NCBI RefSeq assembly: GCF_001194135.2 | Contig: NC_068998.1 | Location: forward strand, 49,437,426-49,470,121 | Source of the DNA: Octopus bimaculoides | Taxonomy: Eukaryota | DNA: 32,696 bases | Direction of reading: 5' to 3' | Shown: in pieces, positions 2,171-31,027 of the stretch | Numbering within the stretch: position 1 is the first letter of the stretch | Layout of the letters: each line of letters starts with the position of its first letter | Position numbers and translations under genes: made by a program | The notes under the pieces: generated by a model | The model's input: only the letters and a program-made list of their open reading frames with translations | Told to the model about the DNA's origin: nothing | The model's database searches: none

Positions 2171-2185
2171 CTAAAGCCCAGGAGC
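2171..2185 (-). CDS. Paralog C putative terminal exon (APGL-stop)
   Basis: Strong acceptor gtattttcatttctctttccag|GCT, phase 0 matching the exon 4 donor, followed by a downstream AATAAA. Confidence 0.6.
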   Translation of the reverse strand, partial: APGL

Positions 2186-4161
2186 CTGGAAAGAGAAATG
2201 AAAATACGCATTCAATGTCTGATACTGAATATAATTTAATACACAATTTCTAGTTATGGACTTCAAATTTTTCAAGTGTGATATTGTGTTGATTATTATT
2301 GGCAAAATAACATTTGCATTGATAATTCTAACATTTTTTTATCCACGATATTTGAGTTGCTAATACTAAGATGCATCAACAGTTATTTCAAAATTTTACA
2401 TTATTATTAGGTGTAATTATTATATTACACCATAATCGATTTAGTGTTTTAGTCACTACCAGTGGCATTTTATCTCATTATTCCTGTACAGAGTAACGAT
2501 TATGCCAAACTGTGTTTTTGTCTCTTTCAGTTATATAAAATGGTAGGGTGTTTTTATCATGATTTTTAAATTAAAGATTTTCACTTAGTACCGATATATT
2601 AAATGTATGTTATGTCGCATCATTAGCAGAGTTTCACAGTAATTTTATCATATATCTTAGGCATGATTAATATAGTAATGTGTTAGCTAATATTGCATGA
2701 ATACTGAACGCCTGACATTTGTCTTGTCTTCTTGTCTTGTAACGGTATTCACCCAGGAGCGTGTAGGCCGGCTCCCATTGAGTTCACCGCGATTTGCATT
2801 CATGGGAGTTTCGAGGGATGATCAGAATCCGCAAAAAGGTCCCCATCTCTTCCTGCTATTCCTTCCCATCAAAGGATGCCTGAAGATGCGATCCAATAGC
2901 ACCAGGTAGCCGGCGGAACCCCAAAAAGGCGTGGCTTCGAATTCACCATTGCCTTCCAATTAGCCGGGTTGCGACCCGAGAACCGCCAGTGTCAGAGCCG
3001 AACACATTGGGTACCTTATCAGGGATTCGATGTCCACGACGGCATAGCTCTGACGCTCACTCGTTTCACCTTCCCACCGCGATGAGGTCAAATGGCAAGA
3101 ATTAGAGAATGACCGTTTGTATCAATTTTTGGTCAATGACATGGAAAAAAAACTGTTACTTTCACGTGTTAGAGCATACATATTACAGAAGAATATTTCG
3201 GATATTATTGGTAAGTTAGCGTTAACAAAACGATTATGTATTAATTAATATGTAAATTCTATGTTTTACCTTATCTTTCCCCTCATCAGGTTTCTTGTCT
3301 TCGTTGCCTGCATTGTCTTTCGTGTCCGTCTTTTCTTTCTTGTCCGTCTTTTCTTTCTTGTCCGTCTTTTCTTTCTTGTCCGTCTTTTCTTTCTTGTCCG
3401 TCTTTTCTTTCTTGTCCGTCTTTTCTTTCTTGTCCGTCTTGTCTTTGTTATCAGTTTTCTTTTCGTCTGTGTTCTTGTTGTCGTTGCTGGTGCTCCCACC
3501 TGTTGTGTCATCATTGGCGTTAGTGTTGATGTTACGGAGGAATTTTGCTGAAAATGAACGTAAATGTGGTATGTCTCTCGCTTTCATTTTGTATACACAT
3601 GTACATATATTTGTTTGTAGATGTGTATATATATACGTGTGTGCGTGTTTGTTTGTGTATGTGTGTGAGTGTGTGTGTATGTATGTATGTATGTATGTAT
3701 GTATGTGTGTGTTTGTGTGTGTGTAGAGGCGCAATGGCCCAGTGGTTACTGGAGCGGACTCGCGGTCATTGGGTCGCGGATTCGATTCCTAAACCCGGCG
3801 TTGGAAAGTCTGCTACAGAGCATGCGTGAGCAAGCTTATAGCGACGAGGCAATGTTTGGAGTAGTACGGGCGCTTCAATGTCAGAAGAACGTTCCTGGAG
3901 GAGGATGGGCGAACTGGAAAACCAGCCACGTGCATCATCCTAGGAAATGTGAAGACAAACCATTAGTATATGCATGGGAATCGTCACAGGATATCAACGA
4001 CACTATTGATGATGTTGGTCAGTCGTATGGGTCCGTGCAGGCAATACTAACGTCCGATGTGAACATGCGGTACATCTCTGCCAAGTTTATCCCCTGTTTG
4101 CTGACCACTGAGCAGAATGAAAATCGCTTCGAAGTCTGTGAAGATCTTCGATAGCGTTCCG

Positions 4162-4200
<39 letters not shown>

Positions 4201-4433
4201 NNNNNNNNNNNNNNNNNNNNNNNNNNNNNNNNNNNNNNNNNNNNNNNNNNNNNNNNNNNNNNNNNNNNNNNNNNNNNNNNNNNNNNNNNNNNNNNNNNNN
4301 NNNNNNNNNNNNNNNNNNNNNNNNNNNNNNNNNNNNNNNNNNNNNNNNNNNNNNNNNNNNNNNNNNNNNNNNNNNNNNNNNNNNNNNNNNNNNNNNNNNN
4401 NNNNNNNNNNNNNNNNNNNNNNNNNNNNNNNNN

Positions 4434-4481
<48 letters not shown>

Positions 4482-6494
4482 TGTGTGTGTATTGGAAAAT
4501 ATCATTTATTACAATGATTAATTTCAAGGTATATTGAAGCTGTTACGACATCATTCATTAGATCATGTATTGAATAAACTCTATGACTTAATATGACTTA
4601 CGATAACAGAGCATGCCAAAACGGAAAGAGAAATAATGAACACAGTCTAGACTTATTCCATGTAAACACTTCTCCCACATAATGTAGCGTCTGTAACAGA
4701 AACACATGAATTACATATTTTGAAAATTCATTCGCATCGTGTACATCATTTAGATTAAGTTCTGAGAATAAATCACTGTTTGGTATGTTTTGTATTTATA
4801 CTTCCGGTATATTAATCATAAACAAAGAGACATATTTAAATACATGCTACATACATTGATATCGTTGACCTCCAGCTTTTCAAACGTATTACCAAAACAC
4901 ATATTTAATGATAAACACGCATACTTAACTGGCAGGCCTGATTTTAATTATCAAAAAAATCTTTCTGAAAATTTGCATAAACTCCTTAAAAATGGATGCT
5001 ACTTAACATAAGATATCATTAAGTAAACTCTGATAACTATGACGTTATTATGCTCATTATATGGAGCAAATGCAGGCTCGTACCTTAGTGGGTGGGACAT
5101 TCGGTTCACGATCGTTGGATCGTGAGGTCGAGTCACGGTGGCGTGTTGTATCCTTGAGCAACAGATTTTATTTCACGTTGCTCCAGTCCATTTAGCTGGC
5201 AAATATGAATAGTATTTCTATTTCAAAGGGTCAGCAATGTCACATTATGTGTCAGGATGAATCTGCTTGAGATCTATGTTAAGTGTATCCGTGTCTGTGG
5301 AGTGCTCAGCTGCTTGCACGTCTTTCCCACGACCAAGTTCTTCCTTTGATCGGGACAACCGGAACCCCCGACGAAGTACCAGAGAAAGAGAAGGAGAATA
5401 TATCTGAGAATACTAAGTGAAAAGATTTGTACAATTGCTAACCATAATAATTTTAGTGGGTATTCAAATGTGTGAATGCTGTCAGAATTGGTTGCAGAGT
5501 AGAAAACAGAAACATGTGTCCCGTGATGTTTCACGTTCTGAGTTCAATCGAATTCTGCAAATGAATTCGCCATCATCGTAATAGGAGCAGCAAAGCGGAG
5601 TTGATGTTATCTCATAATTAAGTGAATTCATCATTAAATAGTTACATAACAAATTATATTCATGTATTAGTAAAATTACTCATAACCATCTCATTTCAGT
5701 GAAAAAAAAAAATTTTTTTAAAGATTTACAACAACATCTGTTTCTTGTCGCTAAAATGTTTGTTTTTCATGTGTTGATTTGGAAACCTATTCACTGAAAT
5801 GCCGAGGCTCTGACGCCGAAATCTTGTCTTTTTTTAGCACTTAGATATGACAACAGATGTACTAATATCCCTATAATATCAGAAACAACCGTGTGATTAG
5901 AGGCGATCAATGGAGAACTAAAGAATTATTTTGCTGGTGTGTGGTTGGAGATCAGAAGATATTTAGTTATATAAAATGATGTATGGGACAAGTATATTAA
6001 TCGTAGTATACGAAAGTATATTGAAGAATGATAAGAAGATCGTATGTACACGCAACGCTCATCGTGTGTTTTCGCAGTAGGCATGGCTGTATTCGCCCAC
6101 TTGCAGGTCTTCGAAGCCAAATCAATGCAGGTGTTGGACATTGCAGAACCTGAAAAACATATTTTTATCATTCAGATACGGTTATATAAAATTGAAAGAG
6201 AGAAGCTGGTTTCAGATAATGAAAGTAAAGTACGAGGGTGGGCTGAAAATTTCATTGTCTAAGCATGAAGAAGATATGTAAAAAATTGATCATGTACACC
6301 ACATAGTGATGCATGACAGACACACATATATGTATAAATACACATATATAGAAGCGTGTGAGGGTGTGCCTGCGTCTGTCTGTGTGTGTGAATGACAAAC
6401 ATCTTTATGTAAAAGCAAAGGAGGCATATCCAGGTGTCAACTTACCGATAATTAGAAGACAAATACAAGCGGAATAGTTCACTGTCAATATCAT
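2171..6494 (-). CDS. Paralog C: 5-exon gene, secreted six-cysteine protein with charged repeat tail, 176 aa; complement(join(2171..2185,3270..3547,4602..4690,6050..6149,6446..6494))
   Basis: Manual splicing gives MILTVNYSACICLLIIGSAMSNTCIDLASKTCKWANTAMPTAKTHDERCVRYIMWEKCLHGISLDCVHYFSFRFGMLCYPKFLRNINTNANDDTTGGSTSNDNKNTDEKKTDNKDK(TDKKEK)x6 TDTKDNAGNEDKKPDEGKDKAPGL*. All introns are GT-AG with compatible phases (1,2,1,0); 531 nt in total. Cys spacing is identical to paralogs A and B. AATAAA lies about 57 nt after the stop. The last exon is the least certain. Confidence 0.85.
2715..3065 (-). mobile_element. 3-prime fragment of an RTE-like LINE in intron 4 of paralog C
   Basis: GC-richer island. 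The minus strand ends CCTGGGTGAATACCGTTACAAGACAAGAAGACAAG, i.e. ORF end PG-stop plus a short CAAG-type tandem tail typical of RTE-clade 3-prime ends. The frame is broken. Confidence 0.5.
3270..3547 (-). CDS. Paralog C exon 4 (KFLR plus Asp/Lys/Thr/Asn-rich tail)
   Basis: Acceptor tttacgttcattttcag|CA completes the Pro codon in phase 1; open for 92 codons; donor AAG|gtaaaa. Confidence 0.8.
3324..3431 (-). repeat. Coding minisatellite, 18-bp unit x6 perfect (encodes TDKKEK)
   Basis: Plus strand gtccgtcttttctttctt repeated six times without variation, with degenerate units on both sides. Confidence 0.95.
3724..3800 (+). mobile_element. tRNA-derived SINE head
   Basis: A-box-like TGGCCCAGTGG and B-box-like GATTCGATTCC, following a (TG)n/(TATG)n run. 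Confidence 0.65.
3820..4154 (+). pseudogene. Mariner transposase fragment (N-terminal HTH region)
   Basis: QAYSDEAM...VGQSYGSVQAILTSDVNMRYISAKFIPCLLTTEQNENRFEVCEDL matches the mariner AKxVPRLLT region; internally frameshifted. Confidence 0.8.
4201..4433. other. Assembly gap (other gaps: 9050-10017, 20172-20338, 22296-22590, 28567-28965)
   Basis: Runs of N, mostly flanked by microsatellites. Three of the five gaps fall inside introns of the predicted genes. Confidence 1.
4602..4690 (-). CDS. Paralog C exon 3 (RYIMWEKCLHGISLDCVHYFSFRFGMLCY)
   Basis: Acceptor gtttctgttacag|ACGC, donor TATC|gtaagt; C-x7-C-x11-C as in exon 3 of A and B. Confidence 0.9.
5080..5320 (+). mobile_element. SINE (tRNA head plus ccttgagca...atttcacgttgctccagtcca core)
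   Basis: The core is shared with 11595-11730, 19770-20080 and (reversed) 15830-15986. Confidence 0.65.
6050..6149 (-). CDS. Paralog C exon 2 (GSAMSNTCIDLASKTCKWANTAMPTAKTHDERCV)
   Basis: Acceptor tatgtttttcag|GT, donor TGCGT|gtacat; 100 nt, the same length and phases as exon 2 of A and B; C-x7-C-x16-C. Confidence 0.9.
6446..6494 (-). CDS. Paralog C exon 1 (signal peptide MILTVNYSACICLLII)
   Basis: AAG-ATG start, hydrophobic codons, phase-1 donor ATCG|gtaagt; upstream in-frame TAG with no intervening ATG. Confidence 0.8.
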
Positions 6495-6600
6495 CTTAAC
6501 AGCAAATTTTCGGGCGTCAATGTGCTACTCTGTATTTTGAATTGTTTAACATGTCCAGATATGAAGCAACAGATGTCTCTAAACACTTTTTCCACAATTA

Positions 6601-6612
6601 TATTTATATATA
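6601..6612 (-). promoter_or_regulatory. Candidate TATA box of paralog C
   Basis: TATATATAAATA on the minus strand about 107 nt upstream of the ATG. The AT-rich background makes this weak. Confidence 0.3.
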
Positions 6613-6734
6613 AATTGCAATTAAAGCATTTTAAGACGTTTCTTTAGGATTCACTTGTCCTGCTCTTTTATCTTCTCTGGATTTATATGACATTTACGCA
6701 AATTAAAAGCGTATAACTTATCGTTTTATTTGTT

Positions 6735-6945: not shown

Positions 6946-7039
6946 CACGAATACACATATTACACAATTACACATGCATATACACACATACGTACATATA
7001 TACACACACACATTTATATATATATATATACACAGACAC

Positions 7040-8045: not shown

Positions 8046-8049
8046 GATA

Positions 8050-8499: not shown

Positions 8500-9049
8500 G
8501 ATTTGAATCCACAATGAAAACGTCAGCTTAACAAAAACAGCTGAAATGTTTGGTGTATCAAGAAGTACTGTCTCGAAGATAATGACAGCCTTTGAGAAAG
8601 AAGGAAAAACTTCCTCGTTGAAACAAAACTCCGGAAGAAAACCAAAGCTTTCAGATAGGGACCTTCGGAATCTTACGCCAATTGTTAGAAAGGATCACAA
8701 AATTACAGATCCCAAATTTACTGCAGAGCTTAATGACAACCTCGAGAACCCAGTTTCCACAAAATCTGTTCCCTGGGAGCTGCATAAACCCGAATTTCAA
8801 GCGAGAGCTGCATTCAGAAAACAGCTACTTTCAAAAACAACCCTTGCAAAGAGTTTACAGTAGAGTAAAAACCTACCGAATTGGTCCCTAGAGCAGTGGA
8901 AGAATCTTATTTTCTTGGACGAGTCATCCTTTACCTTATTTCCGACCACCGACCGAGTATACGTTTGGAGACAACCAAAAGAAGCATTTGACCCATATTG
9001 TCTTCTTTGAATTGTTAAACATGGAGGAGGATCTGTGATGATCGGGGGG
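8500..9049 (+). pseudogene. Tc1-family transposase fragment, running into an assembly gap
   Basis: FGVSRSTVSKI...SGRKPKLSDRD (HTH), then WSLEQWKNLIFLDESSFTLF and VKHGGGSVMI (first catalytic Asp region); contains in-frame stops. Confidence 0.9.
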
Positions 9050-10327
9050 NNNNNNNNNNNNNNNNNNNNNNNNNNNNNNNNNNNNNNNNNNNNNNNNNNN
9101 NNNNNNNNNNNNNNNNNNNNNNNNNNNNNNNNNNNNNNNNNNNNNNNNNNNNNNNNNNNNNNNNNNNNNNNNNNNNNNNNNNNNNNNNNNNNNNNNNNNN
9201 NNNNNNNNNNNNNNNNNNNNNNNNNNNNNNNNNNNNNNNNNNNNNNNNNNNNNNNNNNNNNNNNNNNNNNNNNNNNNNNNNNNNNNNNNNNNNNNNNNNN
9301 NNNNNNNNNNNNNNNNNNNNNNNNNNNNNNNNNNNNNNNNNNNNNNNNNNNNNNNNNNNNNNNNNNNNNNNNNNNNNNNNNNNNNNNNNNNNNNNNNNNN
9401 NNNNNNNNNNNNNNNNNNNNNNNNNNNNNNNNNNNNNNNNNNNNNNNNNNNNNNNNNNNNNNNNNNNNNNNNNNNNNNNNNNNNNNNNNNNNNNNNNNNN
9501 NNNNNNNNNNNNNNNNNNNNNNNNNNNNNNNNNNNNNNNNNNNNNNNNNNNNNNNNNNNNNNNNNNNNNNNNNNNNNNNNNNNNNNNNNNNNNNNNNNNN
9601 NNNNNNNNNNNNNNNNNNNNNNNNNNNNNNNNNNNNNNNNNNNNNNNNNNNNNNNNNNNNNNNNNNNNNNNNNNNNNNNNNNNNNNNNNNNNNNNNNNNN
9701 NNNNNNNNNNNNNNNNNNNNNNNNNNNNNNNNNNNNNNNNNNNNNNNNNNNNNNNNNNNNNNNNNNNNNNNNNNNNNNNNNNNNNNNNNNNNNNNNNNNN
9801 NNNNNNNNNNNNNNNNNNNNNNNNNNNNNNNNNNNNNNNNNNNNNNNNNNNNNNNNNNNNNNNNNNNNNNNNNNNNNNNNNNNNNNNNNNNNNNNNNNNN
9901 NNNNNNNNNNNNNNNNNNNNNNNNNNNNNNNNNNNNNNNNNNNNNNNNNNNNNNNNNNNNNNNNNNNNNNNNNNNNNNNNNNNNNNNNNNNNNNNNNNNN
10001 NNNNNNNNNNNNNNNNATATATATATATATATATATATTTCTTTTGAATTCGCTTCGAAATTTCACCATTTCTCAATTAAGGAACCGGTTTCTTCTATAG
10101 ACTACATAATTCGCAGATGAGGGTGTATAGAAATACGTTTGTTCCCCAATCACCTGGGAATCGTGAATGCACTTCCGGTTCTATGGCCGTAAATAACTTT
10201 ATCGAAATATAAATTATTTCGGAAAGCAGAATAGGAAATATGACTAGCGAAGTTGGAGTCGTAAGCGGCGTAATTGATCAAAACTTGTAGAACAGGCAAA
10301 TGTGGTTTAATTATAATTTTGTATAAT

Positions 10328-11730: not shown

Positions 11731-12360
11731 TGAAGCATGACGACGTAAGGTAGAACTTGTTGACAAGAAAGTCTGACTATCATACGATTTAGTACCAGCA
11801 GCTAGTCTACAGAAGAAAAGGACAAACACTTACACAGTTTATAATGTGTTCAATTTTAACTAAAGGGATCCATGAATATTTCACGAAATTAATAGTAAAC
11901 CTATTGAGTTATCCCTAAAATCTTTCTCCAAAAAGACTGAAGGTGTAGACTGTGTCGTGTCTCTATGATAAGGAAGTCGCCCATCAGCTATTTATTGAAG
12001 AGTTAAGGAAATTGGAATACGATGAATACTTAATGCACTTTATGTATATACTTTATATATTTATGCACAATTTTATAGACTTAATACACATCACGCGTAA
12101 AATAGATATTCACACTTATTTTTCCATAAATCCTATGAACAGAAAAAAAAATTGCATTTTAAAATATAAATGGTCACAATTTCTCCTCTGTATGACAACA
12201 TTCAACTAACATTTTAAATCTTTTAATAGATATTGCGTTCCGCCTACGAGATGTGATGGACGCTTCTCCGTATATTCTCTCACCAAATTTCTCTTTCTCT
12301 CTTTCTACCTCACTTTTCGTCTTATATTCTTCTCTCTTCTTTTTAATTCTCTTGTTTTCA

Positions 12361-12630
12361 CTTTCCCTTCGACTAATCATGTGAGGGCGTTAAAATTAAG
12401 TTAACTTTACTTCACGCCATGGACGCTTCTCTAACCAACTTTTTATCCAAACACGTGAAAGCGTTACCGACGTACTAAGTAACGTATGGACAAGCAGAAT
12501 TATTATCAGATTTATTACAAACTTTATCTTTATTGTTTTAGTTGTATTGTAATTCTTCTTAAATGTTGTCTCTAATCTCAGCTCATCCATTTCATCTATA
12601 TGGTTTCATTCCTTATTACTATTGAATGTA
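12361..12630. repeat. Conserved block present three times (also about 22030-22290 and 31409-31580), with CACGTG-AAAGCGTTA and CATGGACGCTTCT motifs
   Basis: Direct sequence similarity among the three sites; one copy lies upstream of each paralog. Confidence 0.8.
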
Positions 12631-14365: not shown

Positions 14366-14377
14366 TTAACGGACGTG
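14366..14377 (-). CDS. Paralog A exon 4 (HVR-stop)
   Basis: Acceptor attcatttcag|CAC GTC CGT TAA; the homologous position in B reads CGC GTC CGA TGA. Confidence 0.75.
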   Translation of the reverse strand, partial: HVR

Positions 14378-17127
14378 CTGAAATGAATATATATTAGGAT
14401 TGATATTAATACCCCCTATTCCAGGTCCATTTTCTAGCTCCGTCGATACTCTTATCAATTGGATAGAAGTTCATTACACTAATATTTATGTACTAAGTTT
14501 TAATTACCTGAAATATTACACGAGGAATTAATGGAGATTCTTATCTATTTCTTTAACGCGTTTAAATTTTGCATCACACTGTTTAAATCGATGCATAATA
14601 TAGTTTTTACTTATTGTGTGTGAAATTATGAAAATATAACAATTACAGGTGAAATCTCGGTAAATATGTTGCTTCGAATAGACACAGAAAATTTAATCGC
14701 TGTGCTCGTATTGCCATTATAACATCCATTAGCTAACGTTTGTGTTCTGAGTCAGAATCAAGAATCGGTGCTATAAGACATCTAATTGACACAACAGTAT
14801 AAGTGTACAGCATTTTGTTGTCCTGCGCAGCCGATTTAAAGGAAGACCAATATTTCAATGATAAATATTGTTTCGGGTTATGGGACAGAGCTTGTAGGAT
14901 AGGAATTTTAGTTTTTAAATACCATGATGCCAGTGGACTCTACGCATGTTACTAGCTCCATTATTTCGTGGAAGGTTTCTTTTGCAAACAACTAATAACC
15001 ATATACATTAAAAAATGTCATATTATTACAAATATGAATTTCAGTTGAATGAGAGAGAAAAGTTAGTATGCTATCGTCTCTCTGATTAAACTTGTGTAAG
15101 TGTCATTTAGAATTAATTACGCAGAAACAATGTAAATTAAAATAATTACCGTAGGAATGCATTTAGAAGTAAACAGGTTGTGGAAAATGTGACCACACTC
15201 AGCACGCACGTCTTTTAGGCAATCATAATAATAAATCCAACGTCTGTAAGATAAATACAACAAAAGGATATTCATTTCGGATATAAAGTAATCATTTATT
15301 AATATCATTGTCAAGAAATGGTAGAACATTCCTTCTCGGACTACGAAAGCATACCATACATCGGGTTCTTAAATCTGTGCTTGCAGAGTGCTTACTAGTT
15401 CATGCATATAAAGCATATACTGATTTGCATTGAATCGAATTCTCTTGTAACCGAAAGTCTTCTGTTTCACGTGCAAAATTTCAATACTTGGGTGAATGCA
15501 TAGAAACTTCTACATTTTGTATATTTGTCAGAGCACTTTTTCTGATTACAAAGGAGACAAAATATGGTATATTAGATAAAGTATTTTAGACTAATATCTA
15601 ATGGCCATGATTTAATAGCAATTAATATCTATACTTATCCACTGATAAGTTTTGGTATTGAAGCAATTTCGAATATTCAACGCCATTCCTATATTTACAC
15701 CTTCAGGGATCGGAAGAATTTTCGAACCAATGGAACACGTAGATTTAATAACGGTATAGTTAAATTGTTTCCGTTATTTGACCGTAAGCATGCTGGGACA
15801 ACGCCTTGTAATTGAAGGAATTGAAAACTGAAAGCCAAGCAGAAACGATCCCTTGTATTCGCTAGCTGAGTAGATTGGAGCAGCGGGAAATAAAAGGTCT
15901 TACTGAAGGACACCACACTCCACCAAATATGGCATTGTGAACCTTACGATTATGAGCCGAGTACACTAACCATTAAGCCACGCTCCTTTCAGAGTACAAG
16001 TCATTTCGTAAATAAAGATTCCCAGTAAGAATCCAATCAAAGAAAAATACAACCTCAATATAGGGATGATGTAATTGTCTGTCAACACATTCTGCTTCGT
16101 TCTGGTACTGTATGAGTATCACCCATATGGTTATAATAAATGCGTTTCGACCAACCAGCTTGTCCACGACAAGTGCCAACCGCTTGGTTAATCACTTGGA
16201 CAAAATCTTGCAACTTGTGTACCTCTAGTATTGTTGCGGTGTCCTCTAAATCAAAGAGGACAGCTGCCACCAGCCGACATTTATTTCAGGAGGCACATCC
16301 ACACGCCGACCAAGATATGTCTGCTCGACTAGCAATTCCTCCGTTTATTAGGAGTACTTCATTGGAAAGCACACTTCCACAGTGCCGAAGTGCTTTCCAC
16401 TTGTCACATACGTTTCGTTGGTCCAAACTGCGTTTAGAGCCATTTCCAACTGTTGTTGAGTGGTTCGTTTTATCCTTTTCTTCTTTGTCTTTAAAATTCT
16501 GTTGATTACCGGTTTTCGATTGGTTTCCTATAGGAAATCCTGAGGGCTGTTAAGGAGAACATTGTTTCCGTCCTTCCTCAGCAAGCCCTTCGCATTATTT
16601 TTATTTCATTAATTTTCAAATTTATTATTTCTTTAGTTTTCTTCGTCAAAGAGGCAACACCATTGCCGCTTGATCTATTGCGGTTCGTGTATCTGGTGGT
16701 GTCAGTGTCATTCTGTTTTTCTTTCTTTTTCTTCGTCCTTCTCCTGTGCAGAAACAATACGGGCAGTGAGAGCGTTGAAGACCTTGTTTAACTGTTTGTT
16801 GAACCTCTCTCTCTCTCTCACACACACGCTCAGTCTTTATTGTTGATTTTTTTTTAAACTTGGACAAAGTGGTTTTTTAGCCTCCAAAAGAGGGCTTGGC
16901 TTTTTCAACAAAAACTAGCTCTTTATGCGGGCAGCCAGCTAGTAACAAAAGTTAAACAATAAAACAAAAGTTCGACAATGAAATTTCAAACAAATTCAGG
17001 AGTTCGAAAACGCGTGGCGTACCGCGATGAAAACAACAACAAGAACAACAACAACAACAGCAACAGCAGCAACAACAGCAGCAACAACAACAACAACAAC
17101 AACAACAACAACGACAGCAACAACCGA

Positions 17128-17198
<71 letters not shown>

Positions 17199-18004
17199 GT
17201 ACACGCATTGTGCATTGACTAATGGAGATCTATGGTTAGCTCTTGCTGAATTCGTGCAATAACTTATGGCCAGATTTTGACACATGCTTAAAGCTGCAGC
17301 ACCTAAAAGATTTGGGATTTATTTATTAATAATTAGTCATACATATATTGAGTGTACAATCGTTATGTTTAAAAAAGAAAGCTAGATACAAAACAAAAAT
17401 AACGAAGCTAACTTCGGGTCCCCATGCTCTCAGTAGTCTATTATAATAAGTGTTTTATGAATGATATCACTGTTGTCCTGCTTCCATTATAACTTCACAG
17501 GTGACGATGTGGTACAATTATTTGGTGATTCTTTACTACAAAATATTTGGAAGGTGAAAATATTTATAATTTTGACATTTTCTTTTATTCTTTTATTTCT
17601 TTCATGAATTTGACTGCGGCCATGCTGGAACACCGACTTTAATCGAACAAATAGAGTAGAAAAGATTATTACAATTTGATATATATTAATCTGGCAGAAT
17701 CGGTAACACCCTGGCAAAATGATTAGCGGCATTTCGCTCGGAGTTCAAATTACGCTGAGATCTACTTTGCCCCTCGTCAATTCGAGGTTGATAAAACAAG
17801 GAACAGTTGCGCACTTGTGTCGGTGAAATCGATTTACTCCTTTCGCAAAACATCAACGTTTGTGCATGTGATAGAATTAATAGGAATGGCTGTATAGTAG
17901 CACGACTGCGTGGCGCCTTGGGCAAGTGTCTTCTATTATAGCCTCGAGCCGACCAAAGCCTTGTGAATGGATTTGGTAGAGGGAAGCTAAAAGAAGCCCG
18001 TCGT

Positions 18005-20152: not shown

Positions 20153-20499
20153 CTCTCTCTCTCTCTCTCTCNNNNNNNNNNNNNNNNNNNNNNNNNNNNN
20201 NNNNNNNNNNNNNNNNNNNNNNNNNNNNNNNNNNNNNNNNNNNNNNNNNNNNNNNNNNNNNNNNNNNNNNNNNNNNNNNNNNNNNNNNNNNNNNNNNNNN
20301 NNNNNNNNNNNNNNNNNNNNNNNNNNNNNNNNNNNNNNATATATATATATATATATATATAACTTCATTTCTATCTAATTACTTAATATATGAATATAGC
20401 TTCTCTGTTTACACAGCAGATGTAAATATGAAAAACAGAAAATATTCAACATTACGACTTACCTGCAAAGAGAAGACAAAAGCAGAATAAAGTTTTCAT
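14366..20499 (-). CDS. Paralog A: 4-exon gene, secreted six-cysteine peptide, 80 aa; complement(join(14366..14377,15150..15243,17203..17302,20463..20499))
   Basis: MKTLFCFCLLFAGAAALSMCQNLAISYCTNSARANHRSPLVNAQCVRWIYYYDCLKDVRAECGHIFHNLFTSKCIPTHVR*. Exons are 37+100+94+12 = 243 nt; all introns GT-AG with phases 1,2,0. Exon sizes and stop position are identical to B, with no indels between the two CDSs. Confidence 0.9.
15150..15243 (-). CDS. Paralog A exon 3 (RWIYYYDCLKDVRAECGHIFHNLFTSKCIPT)
   Basis: Acceptor ttttgttgtatttatcttacag|A, donor ACG|gtaatt. Only this frame is open in both A and B, and five codons differ synonymously. Confidence 0.9.
15830..15986 (-). mobile_element. SINE inserted in intron 2 of paralog A only
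   Basis: The minus strand reads ggagcgtggcttaatggttag...gtgtccttcagtaagacc.tttatttcccgctgctcca; absent from the B copy. Confidence 0.6.
16090..16860 (-). mobile_element. L1/Tx1-like LINE ORF1 remnant in intron 2 of paralog A
   Basis: Broken frame KHFGTVEVCF...VDVPPEINV.W..AAVLFDLEDTATILEV; orthologous to 26550-27600. Confidence 0.65.
17030..17196. repeat. (CAA/CAG)n-(TAA)n compound microsatellite at the start of intron 2 of A
   Basis: Direct reading; shorter orthologue at 27813-27873. Confidence 0.95.
17203..17302 (-). CDS. Paralog A exon 2 (GAAALSMCQNLAISYCTNSARANHRSPLVNAQCV)
   Basis: Acceptor tcttttag|GT, donor TGCGT|gtacgt; open frame conserved with B and C. Confidence 0.9.
17690..17800 (+). 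mobile_element. Decayed SINE (same family as 18814-19035)
   Basis: ctggcagaatcg...ttagcggcatttcg...gagttcaaatt...ctttgcc. Confidence 0.55.
17905..18040 (+). mobile_element. 5-prime-truncated SINE with (TA)n tail
   Basis: ctgcgtggcgccttgggcaagtgtcttctattatagcctcgagccgaccaaagccttgtgaatggatttggtag...gaagcccgtcgtata. Confidence 0.7.
18814..19035 (+). mobile_element. Well-preserved tRNA-derived SINE
   Basis: ggcggcgagctggcagaa...gagttcaaattcc (B box)...ggggtcgat..aataagtaccag. Confidence 0.75.
19770..20080 (+). mobile_element. tRNA-derived SINE with (TATC)n/(TC)n tail
   Basis: gagttcgaatctc B box plus the cttgagcaagacactttatttcacgtt core. Confidence 0.7.
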
Positions 20500-20800
20500 G
20501 TCTTTTCTATTATACGTTAAGATAAACGAATGGTGCTCTGGCAATCAACACTGTTATACTGTTACATGTAATGACATACAGCGTAACATATGCCAGGCAC
20601 TAGTAAAACAAAACGGCGCAATTCAATTGAGCCTGTCATATTAAATTACGAGTGACAATAGTTCTTTCAGCTGAATAGTTAATTGTCGAATAACGATCTG
20701 CACGTGGATAGAGAAATAAAAACTTACAGTTGAATATTTATTTCTCTCTTTAGAAAATTATATAACCTTTAGTCGTTAAACTGAAGCATAACGTTTTTTT
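20380..20800. repeat. Duplicated exon-1/proximal upstream block (homologous to about 30935-31400)
   Basis: Shared runs such as acttacctgcaaagagaag, aataaagttttcatgtcttttct and ggatagagaaataaaaacttacag. Confidence 0.85.
20463..20499 (-). CDS. Paralog A exon 1 (MKTLFCFCLLFA)
   Basis: M-K plus a hydrophobic core; perfect donor GCAG|gtaagt; conserved at 30991-31027. Confidence 0.9.
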
Positions 20801-21925: not shown

Positions 21926-22745
21926 TACACTTCTCCGGCTTTTTTTCTCTCCGTCATTTCTTTTCACTCTCTTTCTGCCTTCTTCTTCGCCTTATCTCCC
22001 TTTTCTCTCTCCATTTTCATTCTCTTGTCTTCATCTAATCACGTGAAAGCTTTTAAATTACGTTCCCTTTAACTCAGACCATGGACGCTTCTGTCACACT
22101 CTTTTATCCAATCACATGAAAGCGTTACCGACGTACTATGTATCGTAACGAAAAGCAAAACTATTATAAGATTTTTTACAAACTTTATCTTCCTTTTTTC
22201 GTTGTATTGTAATGTTTCTTAATTCCTGTTTCTGTCCCAGCTCTTCAATTTCATGTTTTCTATCCCATTCCTTATTCCTCCTGAATGTAGTATATNNNNN
22301 NNNNNNNNNNNNNNNNNNNNNNNNNNNNNNNNNNNNNNNNNNNNNNNNNNNNNNNNNNNNNNNNNNNNNNNNNNNNNNNNNNNNNNNNNNNNNNNNNNNN
22401 NNNNNNNNNNNNNNNNNNNNNNNNNNNNNNNNNNNNNNNNNNNNNNNNNNNNNNNNNNNNNNNNNNNNNNNNNNNNNNNNNNNNNNNNNNNNNNNNNNNN
22501 NNNNNNNNNNNNNNNNNNNNNNNNNNNNNNNNNNNNNNNNNNNNNNNNNNNNNNNNNNNNNNNNNNNNNNNNNNNNNNNNNNNNNNNNNNTGGACCTACG
22601 TAATTTATACTGATAAATTACGTAGGTCCAAGTCCTGGAAGGTGAGGCCGGTTGGGTGAATGAGTATTTTTTGGAAATGGGTGCATTTTCAGACCTTCTT
22701 TCATATATATTTCCACTCGTACGGTATTCCACAACTTTACTTTAT

Positions 22746-22778
<33 letters not shown>

Positions 22779-22785
22779 ATATACA

Positions 22786-24047: not shown

Positions 24048-24059
24048 TCATCGGACGCG
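24048..24059 (-). CDS. Paralog B exon 4 (RVR-stop)
   Basis: Acceptor attcgtttcag|CGC GTC CGA TGA. Confidence 0.75.
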   Translation of the reverse strand, partial: RVR

Positions 24060-27000
24060 CTGAAACGAATATTTGATATATTAGGATTGATATTAATATC
24101 CTATATTCCAAGTTCATTAATTAGCTCCAAATATAATATTATCAATTGGAAATAAGTTGATTACATCTATGTGTTAAGTTTTTTAACTACATGAAACATA
24201 ATGAGGAATTGATGCAGAGTTCTATCTATTTTCTTATCCCGTTTAAATTTTGTTTCTTTACATAATACTGATTAAATCGTGTCGTAATCTAAATTTTCTT
24301 ATTGTGTTTGAAATTATTAAAAAATAAGAACTCTTAGCGGAATGTAGGTAACTCATTTGCTTCGAATAGACACAGAGAATATGATTGCTGCGCTCCTATT
24401 GCCAGTATAACATCTATTAGCTAACGTTTGTGTACTGAGTTAGAAACAAGAATTGCGCAGTCGATTTAATGGGAGACCAATATTACAATAATAAATGTTG
24501 ATTCGAATTATGGGACAAAGCTTGTAGAATATGAATTTCAGTTTTGAAATACCATGATGCTAGTGGGCGCTACACGTGTTACTAGGTCCATTGTTTCGTG
24601 GAAGCTTTCTCTTGTAACAACTAATAACGATATACATTACAAAAAATGTCATGTTATGTATTACAAATATGAATTTCAGTTGAATGAGAGGGAAAGGTTA
24701 GTACGCTATCGTTTCACTGAATAAACTAATGTCTGATTTACAATTAATTACGCAGAAACAATGTAAATTAAAATAATTACCTTAGGTAGGCATTCAGAAG
24801 TATATAATCTGTGGAAATAGTAAGCACATTCTAACCGCACAGATACCAGACAATCATAATAATAAATCCAACGTCTGTAAGATAAATACAACAAAAGGAT
24901 ATTCGTTTCGGTTAAAAAGAAATCGTTTATCAAGAATCTTGCACACGAAATACACATACGAAGTTTATCAACATCATTGTCGAGAAATGGTAGAACCTTA
25001 CTTCTCGGACTACGAGAGCCTACCATACATCCGGTTCTTATATCGGTGCTTGGCAATGCTTACTATTACCCGAATATAAAGCATATACTGATTTACATCG
25101 AATTGAATGCTTTTGGAGCCCAAAAGTCCTCTGTTTCACGTGCAATTCTTTAATGATTGGTTTAATTTGTAGACTTGAACACTTTCTATATTTGTCAGAA
25201 CACTTTTATTGATTGCATAGCTACTGACATAACAAAAACAACGTGAAACAGATGGTACATTAGATAAAGTAATTTAGAATAATTTCTAAAGGCTATGATT
25301 TAATAGGTATTAATCATAACTATAATTATCCGCTCATAATGTTCGTTATTTAAATAACTTCGAAAATTCAAAGCCATTCCTATATTTAAGCATTCGGTGA
25401 CCGAAAGGATTTTCGAACCAACGGAACACATAGATTTACGAACTGTATAGTTAAATTGCTTTCTCGAGCGGGCAGCGTTCCTCGGTAGCACCGGCAGGCC
25501 AAGTATTTCTGGTATTTATCCGAAGGCCCAATCCTGAAAGTTCTCTGAAGCGTACCGGTTAGTTCATCCTCGTCGACGCCTAAGGTTTCTCCATGAACGT
25601 CGTCGCACTTCCCATCCACTACTCCCTTATGAAACGCTAGAGTAGAACTACCAACGACTGTATTGCCCACCTGGCGGAGAATTGTAAGGACGGCACTCGA
25701 GGTGCCAAGTGCCCCTCCTCTGTCTACACCTAATCCAAGACTGCATCTCAATCAAAGAGACGTGGAAAAATAAGTGACAAACGAGGACCACTCCTACTCA
25801 TCGCTAAGGAAACGCTGAAGATGCCGCAAACATAGCGCATGTCTGCGCATCAGCCTCCAGATGGAGCACCTAATCAGTGGAATGCTCCCCTTCCACAGAA
25901 AGCGGAAGAGTAAGCGCACTAGCTTGGTCAACCAACAAACGGTCAAGGGAAGGCGGTGAAGCGGTAATAGATGACGTATGCGATGTACGCATTCGCCACC
26001 TCGGCTCAAGCATTCAAGGACAACATCCATTTCTGGGTGAGGTTGGCTGCGCTGGTCATCACCTGGTCCCAGTTTTACTCTCCCTGTTTTTCGAGATCGA
26101 CTCATACCTCGAGCATTTTAACCGGGCTGTCTGTTCAGCGCATCACGACGCAGTTGGATGCATTGGCCTTGCCTCTACAGATGCCGAGTGGCAAACCCAC
26201 TGACTTTTCAACGTTAATTTTTGCTGCTGTCCCCGCTACATATTCTTTTAATGTGTCGCCAATTAGGTCTATATGCCTGGGGTTCGACACTGTGTTGGTG
26301 ACATTCTAGATCATACGGGACACCCCTCAAAGCCTCCAGCAACCACAGTGTAGCTCAAGTGTTAGTACATACAGACGGACCGATCACAAAAAGCTTAATG
26401 GTTCCGACAGGTGACCATTCACCTGAACAACCGAGAAGATATCGCTGTACGAAGCAGGGATACAACCACGGAAAACTGGACCGAAACCGGCTGCCCCGAG
26501 GAAAGCTGTCAAGTTTTGATGGTCTACCCTATGAAAGCATTACGTTGATTTGCAGCTCGTGGTAGTACTCCGGCTGGTGTCGTTGTTGTTGATGCTGGTG
26601 GTGCCCTGGTGGCAGCTGGAGGTAGCGGCGCTCTCAGTGCTGCTGGAGGTGATGATGTTGGTGTTTGGGTGGCCACTGCTGCAGCTGCTGTTGCTGCTGC
26701 TGCACTGCAGGTCCCCCGGTTCTGGTGTCGGCAGAAGAACAGGTCACATCTTCTTCTTAGGGCAGAAGACCCTGAGTAGGTCTTAGTCACAACAAATAGC
26801 ATCTTGGCTTTCTGCCCTCCACACAGAAGAGCATTTTGCTGCCGTCAGGCACGTTTATCGAATCGGGGATGGAGTTTATTGAACTCTTGCTCAATTCAAT
26901 CAAGGAGCTCTATCTTCTGACCACATCAATTGTGTTGTTGCAACTTGTGCACCTCCAGTATTGTCGCGGTGTCCTCTATATCAAAGAGGACAGCTGCCAC

Positions 27001-27834
27001 CAGCCAACAGACATTTATTTCAGGAGGCACATCCACAAGCCGACAAAGATGTGTCTGCTCGACTAGCAATTCCTCCATTTAGTAGGGGCACAGTGGAATT
27101 ATGCCTTGGCTCGTACTTCGCTGGAAAGCACACTTCCACAGTGCCGAAATGCTTTTCTTTTTGTCGCATATGTTTTGTTGGGCCAAACTGCTTTTAGTGC
27201 CATTTCCAACAGCTGTTGGGTGGCTCGTTCTACCATTTTCTTTCTTATAATTAAAATTCTGTTGATTACTGTTTTTCGATTGGTTTCATTTATGAATTCC
27301 TGAGATTTTATAAGAAAGGCATTATTTCCGCCCTTCCTTAGCAGGCACTTTGTATTATTTTTATCTCATTAGTTTTTAAATTTATTATTCTTCAGTTTGC
27401 TTCGTTGCCAAGGCGACACCGTTCGTGATTCTGATAATGCTGGTGGCACTGCTGGTGCCGACGGCTTTCATTTTTCTTCTTTTTCTTTTCTTCGTCCTTC
27501 TCCTGTGCAGAAACAATACGGGTGGTGAGAGCGTTGCAGTCCTCGTTTAATTGGCTGTTGAACCTCTCGCTCTCACACACTGGCTCAGTCCTCATTGTTG
27601 AATTTTTTTTAAACTTTCACAATTTACATAGAAAATATTCGGAGAAAAGTGGTTATTTAGCCGCCAAAAAGGGGACTCTTTTGAACAAAAACTAGCTCTC
27701 TATTCGGGCAGCCAGCCAGTAACAAGAATTAAACAAGTAAACAAAAGTTCGACTATTTGTGACAACGAAATTTCAAACAAATTCGGGAGCTCTAAAACGT
27801 GCGACGTACCGCGAACAACAACAATAACAACAAC

Positions 27835-27875
<41 letters not shown>

Positions 27876-28490
27876 GTACACGCATTGTGCACTGAAATAT
27901 AGAGATGGTTGGTTAGCACTGACTCTATCCGTGCAAAATCCCATGGCCATGCCTTCACACACGTTTAGAGCTGCAGCATCTAAAAGATTTTTGATTTATT
28001 TATTAACAATTAGTGATGCATATACAGGGTGTATAATAGTTATATTTCATAAAGAATGCTAAATAAAAGACAAAAATGCTGAAGTGTTAATATAGAGCTA
28101 AATTCGGATTCCCATTCTCTCAGTAGGCAATTATAACATGTATTTTATGAATGATATCACTGTTGTTCTGATTCCGTTATAACTTCACATGTGACGATGT
28201 CGTACGATTATTTGGTGATTCTTCATTACAAAATATTTGGAAGGTGAACATTTTTATAATTTTGTCATATTCTTTTATTCTTTTATTCGTTTATTTCTTT
28301 TAATCATTTGACTGCGGCCATGCTGGTGCACCGGCTTTAGTGGTAGAAATCGACAACAGGGCTTATTCTTGGTAAGACTAGTACTTATCCTATAGGTCTC
28401 TATTGCAAAACCGCTATGTTACGGAGATGTAAACACACTAACAACGGTTGTCAAGCGATTGTGGGGGACAAATACAAACACACTCACACG

Positions 28491-28530
<40 letters not shown>

Positions 28531-30820
28531 AACACACAAACACACACACACAAAAAGACATGAATGNNNNNNNNNNNNNNNNNNNNNNNNNNNNNNNNNN
28601 NNNNNNNNNNNNNNNNNNNNNNNNNNNNNNNNNNNNNNNNNNNNNNNNNNNNNNNNNNNNNNNNNNNNNNNNNNNNNNNNNNNNNNNNNNNNNNNNNNNN
28701 NNNNNNNNNNNNNNNNNNNNNNNNNNNNNNNNNNNNNNNNNNNNNNNNNNNNNNNNNNNNNNNNNNNNNNNNNNNNNNNNNNNNNNNNNNNNNNNNNNNN
28801 NNNNNNNNNNNNNNNNNNNNNNNNNNNNNNNNNNNNNNNNNNNNNNNNNNNNNNNNNNNNNNNNNNNNNNNNNNNNNNNNNNNNNNNNNNNNNNNNNNNN
28901 NNNNNNNNNNNNNNNNNNNNNNNNNNNNNNNNNNNNNNNNNNNNNNNNNNNNNNNNNNNNNNNNNGAAAAATTCCTCACATCGGGCTAACATAAGTAACC
29001 CCAGATTCCAAGATTTCTCCAAAGCATCCTAGCTGTCCACAATAACAATTTTCTGGTGATGTACATAACTGGGCTTTATGCTTATTTGTTATATCTATTA
29101 TCACATATCTATAGGGAGAGTCTCTAATGAACCTACATCTACTGGGGTAAATTTTACCCGCACTTTTCATAAGCACTGCCATAGCTAGTTCCTCTACTTT
29201 GCCATTTTTTCTACACCTTTCATTGATTTTTTTTATCTGTCGTTTTCTATTCTATTTCTCTACTACTACCACTAAATCTAGCTTCTATTACGCCGTTAGT
29301 CTAAATGTTAAAGTCCCACAATATCTTATATTTCTTGCTTTTTAGTACTTTACTAGGTTCATGTTCATATCATCAGTATGTTCAAATCTTAGCTTTCGAC
29401 ATAAGTTTCTGTTGATTACTCTTCCTCGTTTGTCATATCTTTCTTTGTATTCTTTCTGTGTCAGCTTCCTACGTTCACCTACTATATGAGTAACGCTTTC
29501 CTCTTTCGATGTACAACCTATATTGGGAATCTATTTGTTTTTGTCTATCTTGGCTTTTATCCAATTCGTCCTTAATGCTTCATCCTTACTGTATCACTTT
29601 CCCACCTTCATTTATGCAAATATAACAATGTCTCACTAATATTAGTTGATGCAACAATCTTTTGGGCTTTAGTATGCAAAGATTTTCCATTCCAGTCAGA
29701 TACATTTTGTTCTTTTTACGGTATCTTACTTCATTTGGATATTCCTATGTCTTGCTGTGACTCTACCAACTATTAGCAAACTTTCTTTTCTTATACCTAC
29801 ATGGGCGTCTTTATCTATTCTAGCTAACTCCACGCAGTCTTCTGCTGATATTAACCCTCTTCCGCCTTCCTTTCTATGTAAGAGTAAACTTACGAATTCT
29901 GCCCTAGGGTGGATTCTTCCATTCATATTGAATTCCTTCCTAGTTCTTCACTTTAGCATTCCTAACTCAGTTTTTGTCCAATCTACAAAAGCTGTTGAGT
30001 ATCTACGAAACGATGCTACATAAATATTTACAGCATTCATTAGACTCGAACCTTTTTGATTTGACTTCATTAGCTTCCTCACCTTTTTCATATACTCATT
30101 AATTTTCATTACTAAAGATTCTAATACTCCTAGATACTTATAACACTCCCGTTTCCTCCAAGGGTTTCCTCCTGGCCAACCGGTGATTGGATGCCTTCCC
30201 TATTGACTTCCTTTCGCATGACTAATATTGCACACATCTCTATTCCATCTCTATATCTTTGTTGAAAAATCTAACAGTCTGTATTAAGTAATCTAGCTCC
30301 TTTTCATTCCTGCTAAAACATTTTCATCATCCATGTAGACCAAATGGTTAAGTTTCACTTACTATTTCTGATTTTATATACTGCCTTTGCATTCGTCAAT
30401 ACTAAACTAAATGGTATCAAAAATAAGACAAGTATTAAAAGTTTCATTTGATAATTCATATCTTGATATTAACTTTCCCTAAGACTATAACATCTGAGTA
30501 GAAATCCACTTTGCATTTCTTCATGCTAAAGATAATTAATTTGCTCATTTTGTCTTTAATACTCAATATAATTAAACATTCTGTTACCCATGAGTGTGAG
30601 ATCATACCATGTGTCTTCATATAATATATCCCTGCGATAGTCACATCTTATTTTGTAGATTTTACTTAATTTAGAACTGTTTGTCATGCATCCCACTAGC
30701 CTTTTTAAGGAAACACCTTTCTGTTCTTATGGTGGTAAATTCTGATAGTAAAGGCGTTCTGAAAGCATTCGTGACCAGAGATGCACATGTCGTCAGCCAT
30801 TAAGGGACATGCTCAACACG

Positions 30821-30853
<33 letters not shown>

Positions 30854-31027
30854 GTATATAATGTAAATTCATTTCTATGTAATCATTTAATATAAAAATA
30901 AAGCTAAGGATAAAGCTTCAATAGTTACACATTAGATGTAAATAATATGAAGAACAGAAAAAAAAAAATTATTTCAATATTGCAACTTACCTGCAAAGAG
31001 AAGAAAAACGAAGAATAAAGTTTTCAT
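24048..31027 (-). CDS. Paralog B: 4-exon gene, secreted six-cysteine peptide, 80 aa; complement(join(24048..24059,24781..24874,27880..27979,30991..31027))
   Basis: MKTLFFVFLLFADAAALNVCEGMAMGFCTDRVSANQPSLYFSAQCVRWIYYYDCLVSVRLECAYYFHRLYTSECLPKRVR*. Same exon sizes and phases as A; 46/80 aa identical by manual count; all six mature cysteines kept. Confidence 0.9.
24781..24874 (-). CDS. Paralog B exon 3 (RWIYYYDCLVSVRLECAYYFHRLYTSECLPK)
   Basis: Acceptor tcttacag|A, donor AAG|gtaatt, 94 nt. Confidence 0.9.
25465..27600 (-). mobile_element. Internally deleted L1/Tx1-like LINE in intron 2 of paralog B (ORF1 remnant joined to the second half of the RT)
   Basis: ORF1 remnant with VEGRKPRCY zinc-knuckle start (about 26800), then AF.RVDHQ...GFGPVFRG...VNGHLSEP (about 26545-26400), GTAAKINVEKSVGL, LFRFLWKG and CYRGTLP, all typical of L1/Tx1 ORF2; many stops and frameshifts. 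Confidence 0.8.
27880..27979 (-). CDS. Paralog B exon 2 (DAAALNVCEGMAMGFCTDRVSANQPSLYFSAQCV)
   Basis: Acceptor tcttttag|AT, donor TGCGT|gtacgt, 100 nt. Confidence 0.9.
28300..28560 (-). mobile_element. SINE 3-prime part with (CA)n
   Basis: tgactgcggccatgctgg...cttatcctataggtctc...ccgct...ggttgtcaagcga. The first ~30 nt are shared with 17612-17640, so at least that part predates the duplication. Confidence 0.6.
28966..30445 (-). mobile_element. R4/Dong-like (restriction-endonuclease-type) LINE fragment in intron 1 of paralog B
   Basis: NHLVYMDD (RT), GRIHPRA...RKEGGRGLISAEDCV, WIKAKIDK...ESVTHIVGE.RKLTQKEYK (decayed CCHC region); frameshifted. Confidence 0.8.
30991..31027 (-). CDS. Paralog B exon 1 (MKTLFFVFLLFA)
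   Basis: ATG, hydrophobic core, donor GCAG|gtaagt. Confidence 0.9.

Follow-up and report, generated by a model that had tools for sequence, protein, structure and literature searches.

Three spliced genes of an uncharacterised Octopus family of predicted secreted six-cysteine proteins

Introduction

A 32,696-nucleotide stretch of the Octopus bimaculoides genome (here called the window, and numbered from its first nucleotide) raises the question of whether it contains, as an earlier note made from its letters had claimed, a hidden tandem family of three spliced genes for secreted six-cysteine peptides of an unrecognised type and, if so, what kind of proteins these are. The comparisons reported here indicate that the three genes, A, B and C, are members of a real, large tandem family found so far in Octopus only. 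The window matches chromosome CM046618.1 (assembly GCA_001194135.2) at ~49.437-49.470 Mb with 100% identity, a position in that record being 49,437,425 plus the window coordinate; its minus strand is the plus strand of the sampled locus L001, and window coordinates are obtained as 11118 minus the L001 position.

Gene families confined to one lineage have been proposed as a main source of cephalopod novelties, yet only very few are described as to protein family and fold. The family examined here is a tractable candidate of this kind, with a large array, a confident and compact predicted fold without detectable relatives, soluble and glycosylphosphatidylinositol (GPI)-like members and a fast-diverging duplicate pair. 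What is new is a family without a description or a Pfam model; tandem families of secreted cysteine-rich proteins are in themselves common, and because the general kind is common we regard the finding as of moderate, not exceptional, interest.

Results and discussion

Three spliced genes on the minus strand

Two sequence anchors, TGCGT/GTAC (TGCGTGTAC) at the exon 2 donor and TTACAG/ACG (TTACAGACG) at the exon 3 acceptor, occur three times each in the window, in every case on the minus strand (a slash marks the splice junction here and below). When the exons of A, B and C were rebuilt from these anchors, all introns were of the GT-AG type and all reading frames were open, in agreement with the three minus-strand spliced genes of the earlier note at the places where it had put them. 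Lengths are given in nucleotides (nt) and amino acids (aa), and the six cysteines of the domain are numbered C1 to C6:

Gene A, minus strand, exons of 37, 100, 94 and 12 nt, product of 80 aa
30991..31027, minus strand: A exon 1, MKTLFFVFLLFA and 1 nt, signal-peptide h-region; donor CAG/GTAAGT, phase 1
27880..27979, minus strand: A exon 2, 100 nt, C1-C3 of the domain, ending TGCGT/GTAC
24781..24874, minus strand: A exon 3, 94 nt, C4-C6, equal to the 89-nt exon of the family plus 5 nt
24048..24059, minus strand: A exon 4, coding part, RVR and stop; acceptor tattcgtttcag/C
Gene B, minus strand, exons of 37, 100, 94 and 12 nt, product of 80 aa
20463..20499, minus strand: B exon 1, MKTLFCFCLLFA and 1 nt; donor CAG/GTAAGT, phase 1
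17203..17302, minus strand: B exon 2, 100 nt
15150..15243, minus strand: B exon 3, 94 nt, displaced donor ACG/GTAATT, like A
14366..14377, minus strand: B exon 4, coding part, HVR and stop
Gene C, minus strand, exons of 49, 100, 89, 278 and 15 nt, product of 176 aa
6446..6494, minus strand: C exon 1, MILTVNYSACICLLII and 1 nt; donor TCG/GTAAGT, phase 1
6050..6149, minus strand: C exon 2, 100 nt, matched by the profile in the six-frame scan
4602..4690, minus strand: C exon 3, 89 nt, canonical family donor ATC/GTAAGT, phase 1
3270..3547, minus strand: C exon 4, 278 nt, encoding a charged tail of low complexity with many K, E, D and T
2171..2185, minus strand: C exon 5, APGL and stop

The model of gene C, which had been drawn by eye, coincides with a gene called independently on the public assembly (L001 4624-8947, 176 aa), both in its span (6494-2171) and in the length of its product. 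The called gene runs across the assembly gap at 4201-4433, and exon 4 of C is required to reach its 176 residues. Both the phase-1 donor of exon 3, which is conserved in the family, and the called 176-aa model rule out a read-through ending for C (...CYRKSY and stop). Exon 4 of C also contains an 18-nt tandem repeat (3316-3446; 7.3 copies, 98% matches) that encodes KKEKTD, and judging from its make-up the copy number, and hence the length of the C tail, is likely to vary between individuals.

The signal-peptide exon of the earlier note was recovered as well: an exon encoding the h-region is present and is common to annotated paralogues, with whose signal exons A exon 1 can be aligned. Exon 1 of A and that of B are identical at 34 of 37 nt.

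A large tandem family so far found in Octopus

A profile built from A, B and C was searched against 1.84 billion representative proteins and returned 13 matches at E < 0.001, all 13 of them from O. bimaculoides, O. vulgaris or O. sinensis, which bears out the suggestion that the peptides are lineage-specific. These relatives all carry the label "uncharacterized" or "hypothetical"; the exceptions are two names that UniProt assigned automatically, "Secreted protein" and, for the paralogue P0013, "GDNF/GAS1 domain-containing protein". In the reverse direction, a profile made from 16 family domains encoded outside the window scored A at 26.3, B at 30.1 and C at 61.0 bits, against a best score of 12.5 bits among shuffled controls (n=3000).

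The cysteine spacing of the family is C-x7-C-x16(17)-C-x8-C-x6(7)-C-x11(12)-C, with an arginine two residues after the third cysteine. In an alignment of 19 domains five of the cysteines never vary, at least 90% of the domains keep the sixth and the arginine, and A, B and C align without internal gaps; the six-cysteine scaffold proposed for the three proteins is thus that of the family, five of its columns without exception and the sixth nearly so. The gap-free pattern drawn up earlier fits all three proteins exactly. Its last element, C-x-P-x3-R, proved to be a coincidence and not a shared feature, as the proline codon of A and B arises from a mutated donor and that of C spans a splice junction. 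The domain of C is 47% identical to that of LOC128249836 (XP_052830341.1, 115 aa; paralogue P0001), the next gene of the array. Of the members seen, A and B diverge the most, lacking the loop proline and the D..Y-C motif.

All located O. bimaculoides members lie on CM046618.1, at 49.42-49.44, 49.57-49.60, 49.87-49.89 and 50.26-50.29 Mb in addition to the window, so that the array extends over at least ~0.86 Mb (49.42-50.29 Mb). At least 11 copies were found in ~98 kb of four sampled loci, several of them uncalled as genes, and by extrapolation the array plausibly comprises dozens of genes. The relatives include LOC128249836, LOC128249786, LOC128249851-853 and LOC128249859 in O. bimaculoides, LOC115219848 in O. 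sinensis and CAI9735826-40 in O. vulgaris. Common to them and to A, B and C are a signal exon, a six-cysteine domain and the module of a 100-nt and an 89-nt exon, and those of O. bimaculoides share the chromosome; they differ from C, which has a unique charged repeat tail of ~90 residues, and from A and B, in which a donor is displaced by 5 nt.

The three genes of the earlier note are thus all real and at the same time a small part of the array, and the window itself holds the first exon of a fourth member:

1006..1117, minus strand: exon 1 of LOC128249836, 112 nt (L001 10001-10112); the remaining exons lie beyond the left window edge

A translated search and a six-frame profile scan found no further complete family copy in the window. 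The annotated start of LOC128249836 places 25 extra residues (MRYYEKHYRVLQNYTINIRINMMPT) ahead of a typical MKYCLCIWFLAVG signal start, and for this reason the true start codon may be the internal methionine.

That the genes were "hidden" holds in part only, for C and at least 10 paralogues already stand in RefSeq or UniProt as uncharacterised proteins. Apparently intact copies are uncalled in the current assembly at L001 21872-24625 and, in a second sampled locus, at L003 5201-5707 and 18358-19329; P0007, one of the uncalled copies, figured as a protein in the annotation of 2015. The array is incompletely annotated, and A and B may be among the uncalled copies.

The family was not found described in the literature, which was searched with its accessions, for secreted or cysteine-rich genes specific to octopus, for Octo-SAP and for orphan genes. 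Two octopus-specific optic-lobe markers were considered as possible members: obimac0010569, which carries an M13 peptidase domain, and obimac0019980, which is predicted to be largely disordered and has a transmembrane domain (10.1101/2022.06.11.495763). As described there, neither matches the family.

A common gene plan and a displaced donor in A and B

Four mapped annotated paralogues (P0001, P0012, P0009 and P0003) follow a common plan: a phase-1 signal exon of variable length, a 100-nt exon, an 89-nt exon and one or two variable tail exons, with the donor of the 89-nt exon being N/GTAAGT in phase 1 in each of the four. The domain unit is accordingly 189 nt, or 63 codons, carried by two exons and symmetric in phase (1-1). 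Two such two-exon modules are strung together in one gene in P0014 (XP_029645997.1, O. sinensis). Gene C fits the plan exactly, and A and B fit it for exons 1 and 2 and the start of exon 3; their exon 3 donor differs.

At the position of the canonical exon 3 donor, C/GTAAG, A and B have C/CTAAG and C/CTACG. With GT changed to CT the next GT, 5 nt downstream (AAG/GTAATT and ACG/GTAATT), must serve, which lengthens the exon to 94 nt and moves its end into phase 0. The common ancestor of A and B would thus have lost the canonical donor while the domain was left intact, its tail becoming RVR or HVR and a stop codon. The exon 4 acceptor motif TTC(A/G)TTT(Y)CAG/C (TTCRTTTYCAGC) occurs three times in the window, at the exon 4 acceptors of A, B and C, against 0.05 expected by chance, and it is found again at the tail exon of LOC128249836. 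By this common motif A, B, C and LOC128249836 have a homologous tail exon, which in A and B is read in a shifted frame.

Another ending of A and B is conceivable from the sequence, in which the intron after exon 3 is retained and the proteins end ...CLPK (or CIPT) followed by VIILIYIVSA and a stop. Speaking against it is the fact that read-through of AT-rich introns produces hydrophobic tails artificially, as at the C-terminus of P0005. The hydrophobic end GMIFSLLIIIFA of this O. vulgaris protein (CAI9735840) equals read-through of the intron that follows the 89-nt exon in a P0012-type gene (gtatgatattttcatta..., L002 ~11217). Both P0002 and P0005 resemble fusions of neighbouring genes, and the O. 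vulgaris gene models of the family need revision.

Two further observations concern the splicing of A and B. A signal-peptide-like open reading frame (ORF) in intron 1 of A (30447-30363, minus strand; MKLLILVLFLIPFSLVLTNA..., MKLLILVLFLIPFSLVLTNAKAVYKIRN) was considered as an alternative first exon, since it ends at a phase-1 GTAAGT donor and splicing to A exon 2 is possible in principle; it is absent from B and unlike the family exon 1, and was rejected as probably a chance ORF in AT-rich sequence. A long (TAA)n/(AAT)n microsatellite begins a few bases past the exon 2 donor GTACGT in both genes (17130-17197 in B, 27823-27874 in A), followed in B by an (AAC)n run at 17032-17124, and these microsatellites could affect the splicing of A and B at what is a weak donor.

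Duplication and divergence of A and B

A and B form a recent duplicate pair, carried by tandem units of ~10 kb each that are ~80% identical through their introns. A local element of ~150 nt, here called R, marks their borders and is absent from the ~98 kb of other array loci:

12355..12506, strand not assigned: element R, copy 1, ~1.9 kb downstream of B exon 4
22029..22167, strand not assigned: element R, copy 2, where units B and A meet, ~1.9 kb downstream of A exon 4
31416..31555, strand not assigned: element R, copy 3, immediately upstream of the promoter region of A

The three copies suggest either that unequal exchange produced the duplication or that another unit follows past the right window edge; copy 3 would accordingly mark where the duplicated unit ends or where the next one begins. 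A third gene of the A/B type may follow there, with its exon 4 expected near 33.4 kb. Two differences between the units were also observed. Upstream of the A start codon, by 140-350 nt, a 103-nt unit is present twice (31169-31375, 92% matches); the region upstream of B (20664-20791) aligns to both copies and appears single, which points to a promoter-proximal duplication specific to A. Intron 2 of A contains ~1.5 kb of G+C-rich sequence (25490-26950; 45% in the 26-28 kb bin) without a B counterpart, which was either inserted in A or lost from B; none of its ORFs matched Pfam.

The coding exons of the pair have diverged faster than the surrounding introns. Exons 2 and 3 differ at 52 of 194 sites (27%), the alignable introns at 549 of 3365 (16%; Fisher p = 3.5e-4), and the 150 nt on each side of exon 3 at only 8-11%. 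The nonsynonymous divergence (dN) of 0.32 exceeds that of the introns, and synonymous divergence (dS) is high as well. All six cysteine codons and the open frame are nevertheless kept in both genes, and under neutral exon evolution at the observed rate the retention of the cysteines has a probability of ~0.007. This pattern fits a diversification of the protein surface on a fixed scaffold and speaks against simple decay, and it does not amount to formal proof of positive selection.

It is against these data that A and B have to be considered as non-functional relics, that is, unexpressed or decaying pseudogene duplicates, with only C and the annotated members being real. The destruction of the canonical exon 3 donor in both copies would agree with such a history, as would the absence of the well-conserved loop proline and D..Y-C motif and the lowest scores to the family profile. 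Neither A nor B was found in the protein collection; C was likewise not returned, although its gene is called, and since other intact array copies are also uncalled, missing annotation says little. Speaking against decay are the preservation of open frames and six cysteines at 27% exon divergence and the exons that diverge faster than introns instead of at an equal rate. With the usable donor 5 nt downstream both copies obtain a short tail in frame, and the donor change predates the A/B duplication, yet both copies have stayed intact since. We therefore judge it unlikely that A and B are relics.

A predicted three-helix bundle without detectable relatives

The structure of the domain of LOC128249836, which is 47% identical to C, was predicted with AlphaFold2 from an alignment of 16 family domains. 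The model has a mean predicted local distance difference test (pLDDT) score of 95.0 and a predicted template modelling (pTM) score of 0.79, and is a three-helix bundle (residues 2-17, kinked into 2-10 and 12-17; 24-38; and 43-56), as the earlier expectation of a helical peptide would have it. Each of the three helices carries two of the six cysteines, and the conserved cysteines probably form three disulfides.

No relative of this fold emerged from the databases, and the description of the family as unrecognised can stand. A Foldseek search of PDB with the trimmed domain model gave nothing better than E = 4, and one with the full-length LOC128249836 model (mean pLDDT 69, signal helix included) gave noise only. 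Two family profiles searched against PDB sequences found nothing meaningful, and P0013 as a query found nothing at E <= 10. No Pfam family matched A, B or C at E <= 10; in particular, defensins, CHH/ITP hormones, saposins, insect odorant-binding proteins (OBPs) and Ly6/uPAR were unmatched by A, B and C and absent among the weak matches of the paralogues.

Weak but recurrent matches occurred to RGM_N (PF06535), in 7 of the 16 domains, with a best single-domain E = 0.0048; the whole of the two-domain protein P0005 scored 22 bits, against a gathering score of 24.2. They raise the question of whether the proteins contain a divergent RGM_N or GDNF/GAS1-type domain and act as miniature co-receptors for ligands of the TGF-beta or GDNF superfamily. 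RGM_N (PDB 4UHZ, 4UI0) is a small six-cysteine domain in which the spacing of cysteines 3-5, C-x8-C-x7-C, is identical to that of the family in human RGMA and RGMB. RGM, GFR-alpha and GAS1 carry GPI anchors, as some paralogues with GPI-like tails appear to do, and GDNF/GAS1 appears in the automatic UniProt name of P0013. Two other spacings differ, with x4 between cysteines 1 and 2 and x21 between 5 and 6 in RGM against x7 and x11 in the family. Membership in RGM_N was rejected because all scores fell below 24.2 bits and an hhalign comparison with human RGMA and RGMB, whose sequences had been checked against PDB entries, gave a probability of 6.2% over 31 columns. The pLDDT-95 model found no RGM or GFR-alpha chain by Foldseek at E <= 10, RGM_N structures being present in the PDB sequence library. 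The context of RGM proteins (RGD, the von Willebrand type-D region with its GDPH autocleavage site, and RGM_C) is absent from the family proteins, which are 78-176 aa long and have no further Pfam domains. GDNF/GAS1 (PF02351) was likewise rejected, with no Pfam match at E <= 1 to 10 and the name of P0013 as the only link. Both domains are leads and not memberships, and we give a co-receptor of either type a very low probability.

Predicted soluble and tethered products

In four paralogues, P0003, P0010, P0011 and P0013, the C-terminus is a hydrophobic tail of 10-13 residues that follows small residues, and the tail of P0003 maps to its own spliced exon. In their composition these tails resemble GPI-attachment signals. 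No hydrophobic C-terminal tail is present in the spliced models of A, B and C or in LOC128249836, P0004 and P0007, for which reason A, B and C are expected to be released as soluble proteins. The predicted mature products are of ~7.5 kDa for A and B, with isoelectric points (pI) of 8.3 and 8.9, and of ~17.8 kDa for C. The family thus appears to come in tethered and soluble forms; the earlier view of a secreted-peptide family applies to the soluble architecture of A, B and C and does not extend to the several paralogues with GPI-anchor-like tails.

These features can be combined into a tentative course of events. The signal peptide would direct import into the endoplasmic reticulum and be cleaved 2-3 residues before the first cysteine, after which the domain of ~59 residues would fold as a three-helix bundle with three disulfides. 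A and B (~7.5 kDa) and C (~18 kDa, with its long disordered tail of K, E, D and T) would be secreted in soluble form, and several paralogues would be tethered by GPI. Our preferred guess as to function, though we hold it to be less likely than not, is an extracellular binding module that evolves fast; its soluble forms would then be diffusible ligands or decoys for the partners of the tethered ones, or for external targets.

The Ly6/uPAR proteins are small disulfide-rich modules that exist in GPI-anchored and secreted forms, are clustered and evolve fast. They resemble the family in this logic, as far as its apparent tethered and soluble forms go, and not in fold, theirs being a three-finger arrangement of beta-strands as opposed to a three-helix bundle; neither sequence nor Pfam searches connect the two. 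A stronger version, in which the domain is an octopod-born orphan fold and dozens of tethered and soluble genes form an octopus-specific system for cell-surface recognition or receptor modulation, working perhaps in nervous tissue or in the chemotactile epithelium of the suckers, and in which diversifying selection acts on soluble members such as A, B and C, we consider quite unlikely.

Small size, a signal peptide, a fixed cysteine scaffold, a tandem array and exons of A and B that diverge more than their introns would also suit venom, and A, B and C might be toxins of the posterior salivary gland that act on ion channels or receptors of prey. Genes of the conotoxin type resemble A and B in their well-conserved signal exon, in mature exons that diverge faster than introns and in the retention of cysteine codons; they are unlike the family, which has no visible propeptide and a helical scaffold instead of a knottin. 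GPI-anchor-like tails and the two-domain organisation of some paralogues would both be unusual for venom peptides, and no family accession was found in the supplements of the octopus skin-mucus and ink proteome papers that were checked, which are not saliva data. A venom function seems improbable.

Predicted secretion and disulfide stabilisation, a mildly basic mature protein (pI of 8.3-8.9, net charge of +2 to +6), fast evolution and restriction to one lineage would also suit immune effectors or antimicrobial peptides that bind or kill microbes in mucus or haemolymph. The charge is modest for a membrane-active peptide, and A and B are aromatic-rich and not amphipathic-cationic. Together with the lack of any Pfam match to antimicrobial-peptide or defensin families, and with GPI-tailed paralogues that are a misfit for soluble killing, this leaves an immune role decidedly doubtful.

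Aplysia attractin and the Euplotes Er pheromones are small secreted helical proteins with six cysteines. A small helical six-cysteine bundle that evolves rapidly and is specific to one genus, as is common among reproductive proteins, could on this analogy be a water-borne pheromone, a sperm attractant or a gamete-recognition protein. The cysteine spacing of attractin is C-x8-C-x6-C-x5-C-x7-C-x7-C and differs from that of the family; spacing and length both differ from those of attractin and the Er pheromones, no similarity to either is detectable, and the family forms a large array with apparently tethered members, whose plausible dozens of copies would exceed typical pheromone loci. We assign a reproductive or signalling role of this kind a low probability.

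Evidence for and against the combined interpretation

Taken together, we consider it probable that the family identity, the gene models, the fold and the soluble architecture proposed for A, B and C are jointly correct. Several points weigh against this interpretation and the binding module built on it. The models of A and B are known from sequence alone, and the loss of the canonical donor in both could mean that they are decaying copies. The link between exon 1 and exon 2 in A and B crosses an assembly gap and intron 1 interiors (~2.5 kb each) that are mutually non-homologous; it relies on an order that is equal in both units, on phase compatibility and on the structure typical of the family, and not on continuous sequence. 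The structure model is that of a neighbouring paralogue, LOC128249836, and not of A, B or C. The hydrophobic tails of the paralogues are short (10-13 residues) and can be mimicked by intron read-through, as in P0005. The dN/dS ratio of A and B (Nei-Gojobori, 0.73-0.85) is not above 1, a consequence of the high synonymous divergence, and the excess of exon over intron divergence could partly reflect a mutation bias or gene conversion that homogenised the introns.

For further work the family merits a profile of its own, such as a Pfam entry, and its module of 63 codons, with phase 1 at both ends, is of a size that suits recombinant and structural studies.

Assembly gaps and other features of the window

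The window has a G+C content of 36% and contains five runs of N:

4201-4433: gap, in intron 3 of gene C
20172-20338: gap, in intron 1 of gene B
28567-28965: gap, in intron 1 of gene A
9050-10016 and 22296-22590: gaps, between coding regions

All exons of A, B and C are clear of these gaps, and the junctions that cross them are all phase-compatible. Microsatellites adjoin most of the gaps on at least one side, which suggests that the assembly breaks at simple repeats. Around the gap at 22296-22590 the anchor points of the A unit and the B unit are 809 and 829 nt apart, a spacing that argues for collinear order and a plausible size of this gap.

A scan of the window with Rfam gave no match. Between C and B, an ORF of 105 aa (8546-8863, plus strand) has a sub-threshold match to the Tc3-type transposase helix-turn-helix domain PF01498 (E = 8e-5, 23 bits, cutoff 31.5), and is probably a Tc1/mariner remnant.

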